A stretch of DNA of 64,000 nucleotides from the sequence record PP355768.1; one strand, given 5' to 3'. This document shows, piece after piece, positions 11,379 through 41,618 of the stretch. Both the position numbers and the translations under genes were made by a program. Position 1 is the stretch's first letter. The number at the start of each line of letters is the position of its first letter. The notes below the pieces were generated by a model. That model saw nothing but the letters and a program-made list of their open reading frames with translations. It searched no databases and had not been told where the DNA came from.

Positions 11379-11385
11379 CCGAATT

Positions 11386-11461
11386 TGGAGCGACTAGGGG
11401 GAATCGAACCCCACTCAGTACCGCTTGGAAGGCGGACGCTGTAACCCGTACAGTTAGTCGC
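11386..11461 (-). tRNA. tRNA-Gly(TCC)
   Basis: Canonical cloverleaf, CCA end. Confidence 0.95.
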
Positions 11462-12692: not shown

Positions 12693-12904
12693 CCCTAAGT
12701 CAATGCCACTACTTGAGACGTTATAGGCAATCTATCTCAAGTTGTCTGCCCCATTGCTTTCAGTGATTTCTGCACGCAGAAATTCTTCTTGACTGGAGGA
12801 CTTTACCACGTCAAACGGCCGGAAATCAGTGGCTTATTTTATCCTGTCACCCATTACCTGCTTGTCTGAGTTTAATCAGAGAGCCTGTAACGGGCTACTT
12901 GGGA
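12693..12904 (-). ncRNA. Candidate ~210-nt multibranch RNA
   Basis: No ORF; closing helix plus several internal helices. Confidence 0.5.
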
Positions 12905-12906
12905 TT

Positions 12907-13015
12907 TGGAAGTATCAGTTGGATTCGAACCAACGCACCGGCTAACCTAGAGATCACCAGACGTTTCCAAGTCTGCTCACTAACGGCCAGCTGCTTTACC
13001 GTGAGCTTTAGGACT
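12907..13015 (-). ncRNA. tRNA-like RNA with helical extension replacing the anticodon loop, CCA end
   Basis: D arm GCT-CACGGTAA-AGC, T arm GTTGG-TTCGAAT-CCAAC, encoded CCA. Confidence 0.75.
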
Positions 13016-13955: not shown

Positions 13956-14047
13956 AACAACCAAAGCGCTTTCGTCCATTTAAGCTACAAGGCCTTTATG
14001 CCGCCTGTTGCGTACGCGGGATTCGAACCCGGATCTCTTTGATTGTC
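13956..14047 (-). ncRNA. Circularly permuted tRNA-like RNA (YrlA-like topology)
   Basis: T arm precedes D arm; ends pair as an 11-bp stem in the anticodon-stem position. Confidence 0.75.
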
Positions 14048-17573: not shown

Positions 17574-17667
17574 TGATGCCTCGACTACACCGGGCTGTTT
17601 AAGCCCCGCCAGGATTCGAACCTGTTAAAACAGTGTTTCCACCAGCCGTAGGTTTCACTGAACATCA
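17574..17667 (-). ncRNA. T-arm-containing RNA with paired ends
   Basis: TGATGTT/GGCATCA closing stem; GAAA hairpin; CAGG-TTCGAAT-CCTG; GC hairpin. Confidence 0.6.
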
Positions 17668-19415: not shown

Positions 19416-19709
19416 TTATACTGCTGCTTCATCTTCCGGGGTGCCTTCCACCGGAGGTTCTTCAGTAGGGGTATCCCCTACCGGAGTGTCTTCAGTTGGA
19501 GCATCTTCAACCGGCTCAGGATCTTTCACGAAGCCTGCTTCTTCATCGGAGATCACATACAGATCCTGAATATCCTCTGTATTGATCATACGAGCTACGC
19601 TACCATCTTTATAGAAGACGGATTTAGTGCCCTCGTTGCGAGCCATGTTCGCATCGATAATCAGCTCAGTGAGAACCCCTTTCTTTAAATATTCAATTTT
19701 GTAAGCCAT
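19416..19709 (-). CDS. Hypothetical protein with acidic Pro/Thr-rich repeat tail
   Basis: EDAPTEDTPVGDTPTEEPP tail; GAGGA SD. Confidence 0.8.
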   Translation of the reverse strand: MAYKIEYLKKGVLTELIIDANMARNEGTKSVFYKDGSVARMINTEDIQDLYVISDEEAGFVKDPEPVEDAPTEDTPVGDTPTEEPPVEGTPEDEAAV

Positions 19710-19743
19710 TTTATCCTCTACTTTCTCTTTGATTTAAAGAACT

Positions 19744-19772
19744 ATTATACAAAATTTCTGACAAAATTGCAA
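19744..19772 (-). promoter_or_regulatory. Early promoter
   Basis: TTGCAA-17-TATAAT. Confidence 0.8.
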
Positions 19773-19860
19773 GAAAAATTTTGTAGAATCAATCTCAGTC
19801 TGCGCCCTGCGGGCTTTTTACCGCTGCCCACTGAATATTACGTGTGGGCAGCGATTAAAG

Positions 19861-19936
19861 TGGTACTCCCTACAGGATTCGAACCTGTGACCCACGGTTT
19901 AGAAGACCGTTGCTCTATCCTCTGAGCTAAGGAAGC
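19861..19936 (-). tRNA. tRNA-Arg(TCT)
   Basis: Canonical cloverleaf, CCA. Confidence 0.95.
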
Positions 19937-19937
19937 A

Positions 19938-20102
19938 TTAATAAAGTTTAAGTGTTTTGACAACCAGATCATGAACCTGTTCAGAATACCGGCCAACGCT
20001 CTTATGCAGCGACTCCTTAAATTCTAGAGTACGTCTAGCGATTAGCTGCTTCTGTTCAGGTGTCAGATTCGGTGGTGGACGTTCATAAGGTGGTGTACGC
20101 AT
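19938..20102 (-). CDS. 54-aa hypothetical protein (not in ORF track)
   Basis: MRTPPYERPPP...TLKLY*; AGGAG SD. Confidence 0.65.
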   Translation of the reverse strand: MRTPPYERPPPNLTPEQKQLIARRTLEFKESLHKSVGRYSEQVHDLVVKTLKLY

Positions 20103-20115
20103 GTTAGTCTCCTAA

Positions 20116-20153
20116 GTATCTTTAAGAACTCTCGTGAAAGCTCTTAAAGATAC
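20116..20153. repeat. 38-nt hairpin element, copy 2
   Basis: GTATCTTTAAGA...CTCTCGTGAA...TCTTAAAGATAC. Confidence 0.7.
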
Positions 20154-21397
20154 CGCCAGTAGGTAGGGGCCTTCCCCTGTTTAAGCTATGCGGCCCTTCT
20201 GTCAGACGTATCTTCCAGTTATAGTCAAGGTGACTAATATACCTTGCCAGATCCCGGCCAACGGATATCCGTCGGCTAATGCGGTCTAGGCGAGGGCACA
20301 CTCCAAACAGGGGCACTTCTAGCCTGTGTAAGGGTGCTATAAATAGTGGTTATGCTTTCGCTCGGGGTGACTCCGGTCATGACTCCATTGTCACATGCTT
20401 ACACAGGGTATACGAGCTTCCGCGGAGCTGTATACTCAACCGTGTCCCACTTAGGTCTCGGAGCCACCGTTTGTACGAACGGCTATCCGAATACTCTTTC
20501 CCACTTAGAATCAGGCGAGATCCCACCTCGCCAAAGTTCATACGATCATCATGCCGTATTTAAGGACTAGCTTTGGCACTTCTGGAGAGCCATCCTCCAC
20601 GCGGTCTGTTAAAATCACACCTCCGAATTTTCGATGTGAAGTTTGGCTATCTCTAGCCTTCCAGCGTATGGTCGCTTCGCACCTGCCACTCTTACGTTCA
20701 AATCGGTTTAGGTGGTGGCAACCCTCCGAAGTTCCGAGTTTGGTTGAGGCCGTCAGGTTTCCTCGTGGTTTAGCTGTTTCGTTCCCGCGAGTCTCCCAAG
20801 TCTTTCCCTGGGAGGGGAGGAGGTACTCCAGCAGCGAGTGGTTCGCCAATAGAACCATCAGTTATCTAGCTCTTTCCGACCGCAGGATTCGAACCTGCAC
20901 TTTCCGCATCTGGGGATAGCTCCCCGCGTGCAGAAGTCTACCAATTAACTTAGGACGGCAGTGTTGCTACATAAGTGATTTCGACACCCCACTATGGTGG
21001 CAATAACCAGCACCAGACGCTATACACATGTCTCCAATTTGCAGCCTAGGCAGGTCAGTGTGGGAGCTATACGAGTTTCTCAGGCTCAGTTCCCCACCTC
21101 TCCGGCAGGCCACGCACCATGCTTCATTCTGGTCGAACAAGTTAAAGTGAGATTCCACCATTTTCTATAAATCAGGAGAAGAGTTTACGAGACTCCGGGA
21201 CAGCTCCCGAGTTTTACAAGAGATCTCTAACCTACGCCCGTCCAATACGCTCCCTGGCCGGTATCCGGACTGGATGCACGAACTTTGTCAGGTGATCACT
21301 CTTAACTCACCGATTCTATTCAACGAATCTTAATGCTCGACGAGTCTTACATTAAAACAAGTTCAGCGTAATCGGCCCGCTGTTCTCTCTAATTTAT
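20154..21397 (-). ncRNA. Candidate giant structured RNA (~1.2-1.3 kb, possibly more than one RNA)
   Basis: No SD-led ORF; over 20 hand-found helices; embedded tRNA-like domain; dedicated promoter. Confidence 0.65.
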
Positions 21398-21403
21398 GAA
21401 ACT

Positions 21404-21432
21404 ATTATATCAGCTTTTTAAGCATTAGGCAA
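21404..21432 (-). promoter_or_regulatory. Promoter driving the giant non-coding region
   Basis: TTGCCT-17-TATAAT, overlapping the hydrolase stop. Confidence 0.8.
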
Positions 21433-21879
21433 CTGAGATTTTAATTTATAGAACACATGGTTGCCAATTTTACTTGTTCTTTTGAAGTCCTTGTCTTTTG
21501 TCCAGTAAGGTTTAGTATCTTTACTGTGAAAGTACAAAGCTCCCTTCGTCGGATCTACTGGAAGATCCATATAGTAAACTAGTCTAGCTATCTCTTTAGC
21601 TTGTTTCCACTCTTCGTCTTTACGATCGAGTTTATGTTTCTTTTTACCAACCCAGCTGAACTGCCCTGGTTGATAGACTACTTTACAATATGTGGACGGG
21701 AATTTTCCATAGTTAACACGATTTTTCGTTACTTGTGCAACTGCGGTCATTCCTTTAACTCCTTCCCCTCTAGCTTCAAAGTACACATTTTTAGCTATGC
21801 ACTCTATCTCATGCGCATCAATCTTTGCCTGCGCATGGAAGCTAGTGAGGATGGAGATCATTAGAATGGCTGCTTTCAT
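21418..21879 (-). CDS. Cell-wall hydrolase, SleB/Hydrolase_2 family
   Basis: CIAKNVYFEARGE, VVYQPGQFSW and IGNHVFY motifs. Confidence 0.9.
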   Translation of the reverse strand: MKAAILMISILTSFHAQAKIDAHEIECIAKNVYFEARGEGVKGMTAVAQVTKNRVNYGKFPSTYCKVVYQPGQFSWVGKKKHKLDRKDEEWKQAKEIARLVYYMDLPVDPTKGALYFHSKDTKPYWTKDKDFKRTSKIGNHVFYKLKSQLPNA

Positions 21880-21943
21880 TATTTCTCCTTTACTCTTTGA
21901 TTCAAGAATAATAGTATATCAAGAAATCAGCCATTTAGTCAAA

Positions 21944-22948
21944 TCAAATTTTCAATTTCGATTCGATAGTTTTAATACAGTACGCTTCTACCAGGGCGTC
22001 AAACACCGGATCATGTTTCGACGGGTAGACCCCCTCAGGAATCAGGTTGTAACGCTCGATTACGTCATGTGCATAGATTTCAGCACAGCGTACCAATGCT
22101 TTCCAATCCCCTCCTAGAGCCTCAAAGTAGTCACGCGGGTTGCGGGCGCTAGAAATATCCCAGAACTTCCACGGAACAATCGCAGGATCAGACGGAGAAA
22201 AGACGTTAGCCTGAGCTGCCACTGTTTCGTAGATGGACATGTCGAACTGCGGGCCATTACCATAGTGGCGCAGAGAACGAGTGTCGATATCTTGCTCATC
22301 GATAATGCCTTCGATTACCTGTTTTGCCTCTACGAACGGGCAGATCAGATCCATGAACGTATGCTTGGATACCGGTGACTCATGAGTCGGGTTGCAAACC
22401 AGAACAGTAGACTCGCCGTCTTTAGCGTTCAGAGCTTCAATAATGGACAGCGACGGAGCACTACCCGCACGAGCCTCATTCATCCAGAATGCAATAGTTC
22501 CGGCGGACACCTTAGCACCGAGGGCCAACTGCTGGGCAACGTTAGGAATGCCTAGAACGATATAAGGATCTAGCGATAGATCTTTCATCAGTACGAAAGC
22601 GAAAGACGGCATAGCGATAAAGGTGCTCTTGCAGTCTCCCGGAGTTCCCAGAGATTCGATATCGCAAACAGAGATCCAGCGGTCTTGTAAGTTTTGCATA
22701 TTGTTTCCTTTGTTATTAAAGTTGCTTCTAGATGTGCTACCACATTTAGAAGCCACCTCCGGTGGTGGCTTAGTCATATCTTCGGACACATCCCAGTTTT
22801 CTTCCATAGACGGCCAGTCAGCCGCCCAATCTTCGAGTTCTTCGTAGCACGAATCCATCAGTTCCCGGGAGTTGACCCTAGAGTAATCTAGGGCCGACTT
22901 ATGTGTCGCTGCACGATTGAAATCGTTTTTAGCTACAAAATTTCGCAT
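21944..22948 (-). CDS. DEDDh 3'-5' exonuclease-like protein with N-terminal extension
   Basis: CDIES, GPQFDM and HDPVFDA motifs; internal SD-led ATG at 22699. Confidence 0.7.
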   Translation of the reverse strand: MRNFVAKNDFNRAATHKSALDYSRVNSRELMDSCYEELEDWAADWPSMEENWDVSEDMTKPPPEVASKCGSTSRSNFNNKGNNMQNLQDRWISVCDIESLGTPGDCKSTFIAMPSFAFVLMKDLSLDPYIVLGIPNVAQQLALGAKVSAGTIAFWMNEARAGSAPSLSIIEALNAKDGESTVLVCNPTHESPVSKHTFMDLICPFVEAKQVIEGIIDEQDIDTRSLRHYGNGPQFDMSIYETVAAQANVFSPSDPAIVPWKFWDISSARNPRDYFEALGGDWKALVRCAEIYAHDVIERYNLIPEGVYPSKHDPVFDALVEAYCIKTIESKLKI

Positions 22949-40844: not shown

Positions 40845-41153
40845 ATGAATCAAAACATTTGTCAGGATTACGAAGGACATATTGATGATCAGTCCCACGT
40901 TATCTTTGAAGATGAAGGGCGACAGATTCGTATGACTGTCTCGGAGTTTAGAGGCAATTTATACTTTGGTTTCCGATTGTGGTTACTGGATATTGAAGAT
41001 AACTGGTTTCCTACTAAATCAGGCTTCTCGTTCCCCTACACGTTAGAAATGACTAGCACGTTGTTCCGTGCCTTTACTAAAATACTAAGCAATTCAGAGG
41101 TTCTTCATGAAGTTTACCGCGAATCTCAAAAGACCCAAGCCAGTGACGACTAA
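40845..41153 (+). CDS. PC4/p15-like ssDNA-binding protein
   Basis: MTVSEFRGNLYFGFRLW...WFPTKSGFSF pattern. Confidence 0.75.
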   Translation: MNQNICQDYEGHIDDQSHVIFEDEGRQIRMTVSEFRGNLYFGFRLWLLDIEDNWFPTKSGFSFPYTLEMTSTLFRAFTKILSNSEVLHEVYRESQKTQASDD

Positions 41154-41236
41154 GTTGCTGGCTTTTTCTTTAAAATCTCAATTGCTTAGTGTTTTAAACC
41201 TTGATATAATATTCTCATAGTTTGAAGGAGATCTTT

Positions 41237-41419
41237 ATGAAAGATCATGAAATTGCTCAGTTAGTCAATAAGCTGACCGAAGCTGCTAAGACGTATGCTC
41301 ATACGCAGCAATTAAGAGCACACATGTCTAGAATTATTAATGAGGCGCTACGCCATGAAAAAGATAACTGTCGATGCGTACAGTGCTCCTCCCCTGAAAT
41401 TCCAGGCCATGACGCTTGA
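41237..41419 (+). CDS. Hypothetical protein
   Basis: AAGGAG SD; promoter TTGCTT-17-TATAAT at 41182-41210. Confidence 0.6.
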   Translation: MKDHEIAQLVNKLTEAAKTYAHTQQLRAHMSRIINEALRHEKDNCRCVQCSSPEIPGHDA

Positions 41420-41618
41420 GTGGGTAGAGGATAAGCAAAAGAAAACCCTACCCGGTTATGTATTTATCGGGGCGTGGATTGAAAACAACGTGACACTATG
41501 CGAAATGCTTAGCCCTAAATCGCTAGGCAGAACGGTAACAACTTTCCAAGCACTTTGCCGAGATTTCAATTGGGAAGGAAAGACCAAGAAGCTGTGCGAA
41601 CACTACGAGGTTAAATAA
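41355..41618 (+). CDS. Hypothetical protein
   Basis: Start refined to MKKITV; coupled to ligase A. Confidence 0.65.

Follow-up and report, generated by a model that had tools for sequence, protein, structure and literature searches.

GOLLD- and ROOL-type RNAs that lie beside phage transfer RNA (tRNA) genes are a standing puzzle, in hosts that are hard to manipulate, and the question raised by the locus described here is whether a large structured RNA also heads the tRNA cluster of Klebsiella phage vB_Kpn_AM_K6 and, if so, to which class it belongs. The DNA under study, further called the window, is a stretch of 64,000 nucleotides that is 100% identical to sequence record PP355768 of this phage. 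GOLLD and ROOL occur in phages, often in the vicinity of tRNA islands; in GOLLD the 3' part is conserved and the 5' part variable, with a linker tRNA that is sometimes present, and ROOL is rich in pseudoknots and of unknown function (10.1101/2024.12.08.627333). An earlier note, made from the letters of the window alone, proposed that positions 20116-21432 hold a giant promoter-driven structured RNA that is either a divergent member of such a class or a new one. The comparison with related phages described below shows that the conclusion of a large structured RNA was right, that the structural evidence offered for it was insufficient alone, and that the attribution to GOLLD or ROOL was wrong. 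The region very probably is a structured non-coding RNA orthologous to RNAX of bacteriophage T5. What was a single GenBank line in T5 is a multi-domain RNA of 0.7-1.3 kb that is supported by covariation, has no Rfam family and spans three lineages of the Demerecviridae, namely Markadamsvirinae, Sugarlandvirus and Mccorquodalevirinae. It is remarkable for a helix-clamped tRNA mimic, a palindromic loop that is invariant and a cassette-like exchange of domains.

Homology with RNAX of bacteriophage T5

Phage vB_Kpn_AM_K6 is T5-like, its closest relatives being members of Sugarlandvirus (Demerecviridae, the T5 family). In the window, ARAGORN detected 25 tRNA genes, which occupy the stretch from 10.9 to 19.9 kb and share the minus strand. 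The RNA locus lies just upstream of this cluster in the sense of transcription, between the cell-wall hydrolase gene sleB (21879-21418) and tRNA-Arg(UCU). The GC content of the RNA region is 0.50-0.53, versus 0.36-0.45 in the flanks. All RNA coordinates refer to the minus strand, whose sequence is that of the RNA, and the structure comparison drew on about 70 related loci, some of which are cited below by their L numbers. The outer features are the following.

20116-21397, minus strand: whole non-coding RNA, about 1282 nt, as delimited by the collinear block map, the T5 annotation and the lack of a conserved open reading frame (ORF)
21404-21432, minus strand: sigma-70 early promoter TTGCCT-17-TATAAT, from a promoter scan
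20102-19938, minus strand: small ORF of 54 amino acids with a GGAG Shine-Dalgarno sequence, between the terminal hairpin of the RNA and tRNA-Arg
19936-19861, minus strand: tRNA-Arg(UCU), called by ARAGORN; downstream, on the same predicted transcript

The T5 record (AY543070) lists at 40848-41566 a misc_RNA of 719 nt, rnaX ('RNAX, stable RNA with unknown functions'), which is preceded by promoter P16-17 and followed immediately by a tRNA-Arg gene. The order of the sleB/T5.081 module, the RNA and tRNA-Arg(UCU), all on the same strand, is common to the window, T5, phiR2-01, Epseptimavirus and DU_PP_V, a Pectobacterium phage of the Mccorquodalevirinae. Similarity to the region was detected by blastn in 527 phage records; in 79 of them, Sugarland-like records, it extends over 80% or more of the region. 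The block map is collinear over 18 loci that include T5, Epseptimavirus and Sugarlandvirus, and T5-like phages of Yersinia, Salmonella and E. coli have collinear blocks in the same arrangement. Identity to T5 (blastn) amounts to 83% in 53 nt of promoter and leader, 73% in 146 nt of the core of the RNA and 90% in 41 nt of the 3' hairpin. A gene-free interval of 0.8-1.1 kb is present in every Epseptimavirus and Tequintavirus locus that was fetched. In DU_PP_V, a promoter is followed by ~1.03 kb of non-coding DNA with a central pseudo-tRNA, the same terminal hairpin and then tRNA-Arg, an arrangement that Pectobacterium phage My1 (Mccorquodalevirinae) probably shares.

The promoter named in the earlier note was recovered by the scan, and a homologous promoter (TTGCYWAAYGCYT...TATAAT) is present in 63 of the 64 loci that have the core-motif pattern, the exception (L059) being a chance match. 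The homologous site carries the label P16-17 in the T5 record. Transcription likely starts near 21397. The promoter is one of eight copies of a family, D2, of early promoters of ~48 nt that occur between 9723 and 21442 with the pattern AAAAATTCA-TTGCTAAA...TATAAT-like and are spaced ~1-3 kb across the tRNA cluster. No terminator-like site was found by scanning 19600-22000. In T5 and Epseptimavirus tRNA-Arg follows directly after the terminal hairpin, which in T5 lies ~6 nt from the 5' end of the tRNA, and in some relatives one or two ORFs separate the RNA from the tRNA. Other Sugarland-like phages (L001, 979-1484) have two ORFs at this place, of 108 amino acids (PHROG 18988, unknown function) and 58 amino acids. 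The 54-amino-acid ORF of the window has a ~94% identical counterpart in other Sugarland-like loci (tblastn).

Absence of coding function

The notion that ~1.28 kb holds no gene had to be weighed against GenBank, where several records annotate small proteins here. There are indeed ORFs of 54-122 amino acids on both strands of the region, and some of them are annotated in Sugarland, Roth50, DevonBitter and K7_rec phages. When every ORF was compared by tblastn to 14 relatives, the ORFs turned out to be fragmented or interrupted by in-frame stops; sleB, serving as a control in the same genomes, was 98-100% intact, and its products are 61-67% identical across genera. Among Sugarlandvirus sequences the region differs by indels of 1, 2, 7, 28 and 41 nt and by wholesale replacement of blocks. 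Two overlapping plus-strand frames look conserved, but this can be attributed to nucleotide identities of ~95-100%. None of the ORFs of the region matched a PHROG family, and the ORF of 106 amino acids has no Shine-Dalgarno sequence before it. The coding reading was therefore rejected, and the claim that the interval contains no gene can be upheld.

The annotations themselves point the same way. The ORFs that are annotated differ in identity and strand from one GenBank record to the next, and some records annotate none. Records of relatives (L001, L002, L010, L021, L022, L067) carry two to six conflicting coding sequences for a 'hypothetical protein' together with calls of tRNA-Pro, -Sec, -Ser or 'OTHER'. 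Such conflicting calls over the RNAX region are a systematic annotation artefact of this phage family, and it is a practical consequence of the present analysis that the three to six 'hypothetical proteins' or the tRNA-Sec, -Ser, -Pro or OTHER genes with which many records fill the region can be recognized as spurious.

Covariation and architecture of the RNA

Three alignments, of the 5' domains, the core and the 3' domain, were built with MAFFT and tested with explicit structures against controls in which sequences were shuffled or pairing partners were slid; as the phages are related and recombine much, the counts per alignment cell given below do not equal counts of independent events. Core alignment A1 covers window positions 20996-20834 and has 32 distinct sequences, with a fold from RNAalifold.

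20985-20994, minus strand: UAGUGGGGUG motif at the start of the core, also used as search pattern for the loci; GGGGUG is invariant in all loci, and UAGU is changed to UUAC in Pectobacterium phages
20979-20966 and 20870-20857, minus strand: 12-bp long-range helix, AUCACUUAUGUAGC/GCUAGAUAACUGAU, enclosing the tRNA-like domain (RNAalifold, covariation)
20874-20959, minus strand: tRNA-like domain with D and T arms (RF00005, 35.1 bits; gathering score 29)
20840-20856, minus strand: hairpin Pb, GGUUC-UAUUGGC-GAACC

For the 33 pairs of the core, 93.4% of the cells were paired, versus 84.8% in shuffled alignments (reached in 0 of 500), and 14 pairs were doubly changed, again a number reached in none of 500 shuffles. 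Sliding the partners by one to three columns left 32-42% paired. In the long-range helix, 99.7% of the cells were paired and five pairs doubly changed among the 32 sequences; addition of DU_PP_V gave 99.5% and double changes in 7 of the 12 pairs. Hairpin Pb is 100% paired, and both partners have changed in two of its pairs (GG/CC<->GC/GC; C-G<->U-A<->A-U). In phages of the NBSal002 type the long-range helix is kept with compensatory changes, while an unrelated module of ~55 nt replaces the tRNA-like domain, which implies that the helix is part of a larger fold and does not belong to the tRNA. The strand can be read from the pairs as well. G.U pairs are abundant in the minus-strand sense, e.g., at two positions in the long-range helix, where 16 and 19 sequences have them. 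They would be A.C mismatches on the other strand, so the fold belongs to a transcript of the minus strand and not to the DNA.

An embedded tRNA-like domain had been recognized in the earlier note, and the Rfam score bears this out. Its acceptor, D and T stems covary. The acceptor, GCCGUCC/GGUCGGA, has G1xA72 and U5xU68 mismatches that are conserved across subfamilies, DU_PP_V included. No CCA is encoded at its 3' side, where AAAGA follows the acceptor, whereas the other tRNAs of the phage do encode CCA. The anticodon arm of the window allele has 30 nt (20933-20904, CUGCA-CGC-GGGGA-GCUA-UCCCC-AGA-UGCGG), with a 19-nt loop insertion relative to the Rfam model, and the tip of this extended arm covaries (compensatory GGAGA/UCUCC in L058); other alleles have a stem of 3-5 bp and a loop of 5-6 nt. 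ARAGORN made no call for the element in the window and called homologues Ser(act), Ser(cga), SeC(tca) or nothing. GenBank records are likewise inconsistent, with Pro, 'OTHER' or no annotation. Judged from these sequence properties, the element is not a decoding tRNA. Among the many modules of RNAX it is the only one that Rfam finds to be tRNA-like. The core starts with GGGGUG..GAA, which is invariant even in DU_PP_V, and so are the two linkers that flank the tRNA-like domain, AACACU and AAAGA. No pairing partner was found for the invariant UAGUGGGGUG motif; CACCCC occurs in the window, and no such complement was seen in the T5-type sequences that were read.

The 5' alignment (21403-20987, 12 lineages) gave a consensus fold of two domains, with 97.7% of the cells paired over 48 pairs and 12 doubly changed pairs (0 of 500 shuffles).

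21167-21397, minus strand: 5' domain a, closed by AUAAAUU (21397-21391)/GAUUUAU (21173-21167) and GAA/UUC (consensus fold, pair counts)
21358-21327, minus strand: helix UUAAUG/CAUUAA of domain a, covarying
21212-21192, minus strand: hairpin ACUCGGGA-GCUG-UCCCGGAGU of domain a, covarying
20996-21159, minus strand: 5' domain b, closed by GGUGG (21159-21155)/CCACC (21000-20996); GC<->AU and AU<->UA/GC changes in the helices of the domain
21122-21118 and 21030-21026, minus strand: inner helix GCAUG/CAUGU of domain b, covarying at four pairs
21087-21073, minus strand: hairpin GAG-CCUGAGAAA-CUC of domain b, with variants seen by eye

Instead of the complements in the domain a hairpin UCGGGA-GCUG-UCCCGGA, relatives have CCCGGA/UCCGGG or UUGGGA/UCCCGAA, and some phages have swapped in a different hairpin, GUGG-CGUCUGAAA-CCAC, which covaries with GAGG/CCUC. 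The closing helix of domain b is GAUGG/CCAUC in other phages. Only certain spacings between the -10 box and the core motif occur, namely 41 (T5), 188, 203, 220, 236, 368-412 and 485 nt, so that entire 5' domains are either present or absent. The window RNA is among the largest versions by this spacing, and domain b is missing from versions of 236-244 nt (L014, L069).

Downstream of the core lie the middle cassettes, a hairpin that exposes a palindrome, and the 3' domain.

20584-20833, minus strand: middle cassette region, with compensatory variants
20730-20703 and 20720-20715/20689-20684, minus strand: candidate pseudoknot of UCGG/CCGA (first pair of positions) and UGCCAC/GUGGCA, with compensatory variants
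20658-20645, minus strand: GNRA hairpin GGCUA-GAGA-UAGCC, changed to GGUUA/UAACC
20639-20615, minus strand: hairpin UCACA...UGUGA, changed to UCGCA/UGCGA
20598-20584, minus strand: hairpin GGAG-GAUGGCU-CUCC of the middle region
20506-20499 and 20452-20445, minus strand: two AAGUGGGA motifs, related to the core UAGUGGGG motif
20407-20398 and 20332-20323, minus strand: 10-bp helix CCUGUGUAAG/CUUACACAGG, enclosing the palindrome hairpin
20394-20367, minus strand: hairpin GUGAC...GUCAC with the palindrome GUCAUGAC (20383-20376) in its loop (loop conservation, pair counts)
20236-20322, minus strand: Sugarlandvirus-specific expansion, including hairpin GCCGACGG-AUAU-CCGUUGGC (20276-20257), with no Markadamsvirinae counterpart
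20116-20235, minus strand: 3' domain, common to every full-length locus aligned, T5 and DU_PP_V included (alignment A3, single-sequence folds)
20235-20223, minus strand: hairpin AGUCA-CCU-UGACU of the 3' domain, followed by the conserved ACUGGAAGAUA (3' alignment)
20203-20199 and 20159-20155, minus strand: junction helix GACAG/CUGGC (by-eye helix, single-sequence folds)
20153-20116, minus strand: terminal 17-bp hairpin of 38 nt, once in the window

In the middle region, the changes UGCCAC/GUGGCA<->UGCCAG/CUGGCA and UCGG/CCGA<->CAGG/CCUG in relatives suggest that these two helices may form a pseudoknot. At least one copy of a AAGUGGGA-type motif is found downstream of the core in T5, phiR2-01 (phiR201), NBSal002 and S124, and GTGGG occurs five times against 0.9 expected. 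At the place of the 10-bp helix, T5-type phages have a counterpart, CCUG...UUGAG with CUCAR...CAGG. Of the 60 loci whose sequence reaches far enough downstream, 59 have GAGUCAUGACC, which contains GUCAUGAC, the exception being the truncated locus of phage BF23, and GTCATGAC is also found in 59 of 60. The flanks of the palindrome are complementary but lineage-specific, with UAGGCU/AGCCUA or UAGACU/AGUCUA in Epseptimavirus, 9 bp in the phiR2-01 type and 7 bp in DU_PP_V. In Markadamsvirinae pairing in this hairpin is 87%, versus 25-49% in slid controls, and three pairs are doubly changed. A test for the best flanking stem did not discriminate (mean 6.2 bp versus 5.6 in the null), and the count based on the alignment was used instead. 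L003 and L018-21 lack 28 nt of the Sugarlandvirus-specific expansion; the changes in L001 preserve pairing.

For the 3' domain, RNAalifold on the MAFFT alignment recovered the terminal hairpin only, as variable sub-hairpins were misaligned by MAFFT, which makes the test of this domain less strict than those of the core and the 5' domains. The junction helix has the sequences GACAG/CUGGC, GACGG/CCGUC, AGACG/CGUCU and GACUAG/CUAGUC in different lineages, and it is less well supported than the other helices since it was taken from single-sequence folds and helices noticed by eye. The terminal hairpin is the 38-nt element at which the earlier note let the RNA end.

The individual helices that the note had listed fared differently. 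TGGTTC/GAACCA, GGCTA-GAGA-TAGCC and TGCCAC/GTGGCA show compensatory changes. TTAATG/CATTAA, GCCAACGG/CCGTCGGC, CTCCCA/TGGGAG and the 10-bp CCTGTGTAAG/CTTACACAGG are consistent with the related sequences through G.U intermediates or a T5-type counterpart. The GTATAC...GTATAC and GGCGAG/CTCGCC helices are invariant among relatives, so that no covariation signal is possible, and GCCAAAG/CTTTGGC and CAAGGT/ACCTTG find no support in related sequences. Together with the conserved promoter, the covariation confirms that a large promoter-driven structured non-coding RNA heads the tRNA cluster of this T5-like phage.

Comparison with T5 RNAX and with other known RNAs

The window RNA is an expanded orthologue of T5 RNAX, with which it agrees in synteny, promoter, sequence and structure. 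Both occupy the same genomic slot on the same strand behind the homologous promoter (P16-17), and they share the core, i.e., the UAGUGGGGUG motif, the long-range helix, the tRNA-like domain and hairpin Pb, as well as the AAGUGGGA motif, the GAGUCAUGACC loop and the entire 3' domain with its terminal hairpin. The differences are mainly additions. T5 RNAX measures 0.72 kb, versus 1.28 kb for the window RNA, and does not have the two 5' domains (about 400 nt). The window RNA further has an extended anticodon arm, different middle cassettes and the Sugarlandvirus-specific expansion of ~85 nt, and it is followed by the small ORF before tRNA-Arg, which T5 lacks. The T5 record lists seven other small RNAs of 73-172 nt in the tRNA region (RNAI, RNAIII, RNAIV, RNA1, RNA2, RNA2H and RNA3). 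Like RNAX, these are non-coding, annotated as stable or tRNA-like, of unknown function and part of the same early tRNA cluster, whereas RNAX is 4-10 times longer, has multiple domains and stands at the promoter-proximal head of the unit.

Apart from tRNA, Rfam models gave no match in window positions 19900-21600 or in T5 RNAX, neither at the gathering threshold nor at E values up to 10. OLE, RNase P RNA, tmRNA, group I and II introns and riboswitches are thus absent from the matches, and ARAGORN found no tmRNA. The same search excludes membership of GOLLD or ROOL, one of the two options left by the earlier note. The other, a new class, does not quite hold either: the locus was already annotated as rnaX in T5, and what is new is its size, the extra domains and the architecture supported by covariation. 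RNAX nevertheless resembles GOLLD in that it has more than 700 nt, lies beside tRNA genes, is better conserved at the 3' side than at the variable 5' side and contains a tRNA-like element; this is resemblance and not membership. No model matches, and RNAX is carried by virulent siphophages of enterobacteria. With ROOL it shares that it is a large ornate phage RNA near tRNAs, but sequence and helices are unrelated.

MALAT1 mascRNA and the 3' tRNA-like structures of plant viruses are modules for tRNA-like processing or mimicry. As in these cases, the RNAX domain is an L-shaped mimic of the acceptor and T-arm with a non-decoding anticodon region, embedded in a far longer RNA, and by analogy recognition by RNase P is plausible. 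In contrast to them, the RNAX mimic is internal, clamped by a helix and without CCA, and it has conserved G.A and U.U mismatches in its acceptor. A role as sponge for CsrA was considered as well; GGA occurs 35 times against 21 expected, but this is explained by the RNA being richer in G, and the idea was dropped.

No published description of RNAX, of the T5 stable RNAs or of a structured RNA in Demerecviridae was found in open-access text, where one apparent match to 'RNAX' was spurious. The RNA locus has been known since annotation of the T5 genome and hence is not categorically new, and vB_Kpn_AM_K6 adds an expanded member. For the architecture, the breadth over Demerecviridae, the clamped tRNA mimic and the palindromic loop, neither a publication in open-access text nor an Rfam family was found.

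Mosaic evolution of the locus

The RNAX locus is a mosaic, in which blocks are near-identical in some relatives and fully replaced in others, a whole block in the case of L018-L021. In Sugarland phages of the PWKp9S type the replacement block is homologous to that of T5-type phages. Window positions 20781-20730 (52 nt) recur without a single change in Salmonella phages NBSal002 and JNwz02 and in E. coli phage H8, with flanks of ~70% identity, which indicates recent cassette exchange between T5-like phages of Klebsiella and those of Salmonella and E. coli. A module of ~70-76 nt is inserted before the core in Kpn24-P2, AmPh_EK80, TrudiGerster and DU_PP_V. In KKP_3831 (L015, 1814-2296) and H8 (L017) an ORF of 160 amino acids, which may be a homing endonuclease, lies between promoter and core in place of the 5' domains, and the 492-nt spacing in these two phages is due to this ORF and not to a 5' domain.

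Phage BF23 (L006) has lost everything 3' of the tRNA-like T-arm, including the 3' domain. The ~4-kb deletion also removes tRNA-Arg and the anti-retron gene Rad, and was described by its authors as loss of an anti-defence locus (PMC10644984). It follows from this deletion that most of RNAX is dispensable for growth on laboratory E. coli. In BF23 (1940-2060) the tRNA-like domain is cut after the T-arm and continues as ...GGTTCGAATCCTCGGGGAGCCACCA, like a genuine tRNA 3' end with CCA, and recombination between tRNA-like T-arms may have caused the deletion.

Possible function and alternative explanations

The best overall explanation, to which we would give a probability of roughly 0.72, is that the locus produces one structured transcript of the RNAX type, with a role as trans-acting accessory early RNA as the favoured option. 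Host RNA polymerase with sigma-70 would transcribe the minus strand from the conserved early promoter into one long primary transcript. This is predicted to fold in a modular way, with two helix-closed 5' domains, a core in which the 12-bp helix clamps the tRNA-shaped domain, exchangeable hairpin or pseudoknot cassettes, the hairpin presenting the invariant GUCAUGAC loop, and the 3' domain ending in the 17-bp hairpin. As there is no terminator, transcription would continue into tRNA-Arg(UCU), in vB_Kpn_AM_K6 by way of the 54-codon ORF. The annotated 3' end of T5 RNAX abuts the 5' end of the tRNA, so release by RNase P can be envisaged, whereas with the 54-codon ORF between hairpin and tRNA the RNA may end by another cut near the hairpin or keep the ORF as a 3' tail. 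The RNA might then serve as a tRNA-mimic decoy or sponge for a host factor directed at tRNA, in the conflict over tRNA between phage and host. This trans-acting role is the weakest part of the explanation and is put forward tentatively, with a probability well below one half, on the basis of early expression, dispensability, turnover of cassettes, anti-defence and tRNA genes as neighbours, and a tRNA mimic that does not decode. That RNAX would form a class of giant ornate phage RNA of its own, the third after GOLLD and ROOL, self-associating through GUCAUGAC and acting in trans against tRNA-directed immunity, seems rather improbable; if it were true, an enigmatic class of giant RNAs would for the first time become genetically tractable, with T5 in E. 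coli K-12. Since T5 belongs to the RNAX family, the function can be tested directly in E. coli K-12 in any case.

Several observations weigh against this explanation, apart from the dependence among aligned cells mentioned above. On its own, the sequence has 19 complementary segments of 6 bp or more, versus 21.6 +/- 4.6 in dinucleotide shuffles, so there is no excess, and the terminal stem, with 12 bp in this count of inverted repeats, is the sole unusual item. Minimum free energy (MFE) z-scores of 150-nt sliding windows on both strands are ordinary throughout the region (-3.2 to +1.4). The statement that helices run throughout therefore fails on this sequence alone, from which the structure would be unproven; it is the covariation among relatives that shows the structure. 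The description as stable RNA stems only from the wording of the T5 GenBank record, and cleavage at the tRNA-like domain may leave the RNA in pieces. Moreover, T5 does without the 5' domains, its -10 box being 41 nt from the core motif, and the domain content is highly variable, up to replacement of the tRNA-like domain in NBSal002-type phages, so no single domain is indispensable, the tRNA mimic included.

The possibility of cutting leads to the alternative that RNAX is a polycistronic precursor, from which RNase P, E or III releases small stable RNAs, one of them tRNA-like. This is less likely than not, and would be compatible with the explanation preferred here. The seven other small RNAs annotated as stable or tRNA-like in the T5 cluster and the gain, loss and swapping of domains as cassettes would agree with it. 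A tRNA-shaped domain is a natural substrate of RNase P, and the perfect 17-bp stem could be a site for RNase III. On the other hand, the long-range helix clamps both sides of the tRNA-like domain and is kept where that domain is replaced, which argues for an integrated fold; the halves would remain base-paired after cutting, and the T5 annotators entered RNAX as a single species of 719 nt. Less probable, and in our opinion unlikely, is that the RNA acts only in cis, as leader or processing scaffold for tRNA-Arg(UCU) and, in Sugarland-like phages, as long 5' untranslated region of the small ORF. That tRNA-Arg(UCU) follows it at all full-length loci inspected, the tRNA being lost from the truncated BF23, would fit, as would the short distance between hairpin and tRNA in T5, the absence of a terminator between RNA and tRNA in the window, and the hairpin of the window abutting the Shine-Dalgarno sequence of the 54-amino-acid ORF. 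Yet 0.7-1.3 kb of covarying structure goes far beyond what the other ~24 tRNAs of the cluster need, one or two ORFs may separate RNA and tRNA, and the palindromic loop and G-rich motifs have no obvious processing role.

A further alternative, by analogy, is a self-assembling particle made of RNA only, like the nanocages of GOLLD and ROOL, with multimerisation through the palindromic loop. The GOLLD traits of RNAX (tRNA neighbourhood, conserved 3' and variable 5' part, internal tRNA-like element) and the presence of GUCAUGAC in a hairpin loop in nearly all loci could be taken in its favour. Palindromes of 8 nt, however, are expected ~5 times per 1.3 kb by chance, so that only the conservation of GUCAUGAC is special, the varying domain composition is difficult to reconcile with a fixed cage, and the Rfam models of GOLLD and ROOL do not match; we consider this very doubtful. 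There is hardly any room left for a DNA-level element, such as a hot-spot for recombination or homing or a site for replication or nicking, or for a graveyard of tRNA genes without RNA function. The mosaic locus with insertions of HNH-endonuclease or other ORFs (KKP_3831, H8, BF23), the 52-nt identity between Klebsiella and Salmonella phages and the tRNA-derived nature of one element can be cited for it, but compensatory changes occur across three subfamilies, with G.U pairs that are functional on the transcribed strand only, the promoter is conserved, and just one module is tRNA-like. The chance that the region codes for small proteins is equally slight in view of the broken frames described above, and the coding, DNA-level and 'junk' readings can effectively be considered excluded.

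Additional observations

The PP355768 record has a length of 261,044 bp, more than twice that of the other Sugarlandvirus genomes listed (~106-123 kb), and contains the RNAX region only once; the record may be a chimeric or concatenated assembly. By far the strongest fold signal in the neighbourhood of the RNA is at 21725-21874 (minus strand), at the 5' end of sleB, with an MFE of -61.7 kcal/mol and z-scores of -7.07 on the minus and -4.07 on the plus strand. Structure around the start of translation, or the region of a signal sequence, may account for it. Outside the 25 tRNAs called by ARAGORN, the T-arm-like sequence GGNTTCGAANCC is found at 11380-11411, 12901-12932, 14008-14029 and 17605-17625. 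These sites may be counterparts of the tRNA-like stable RNAs RNA1-3 of T5, and one site of this type (11390-11461) gave a weak tRNA-Sec-like match in Rfam.

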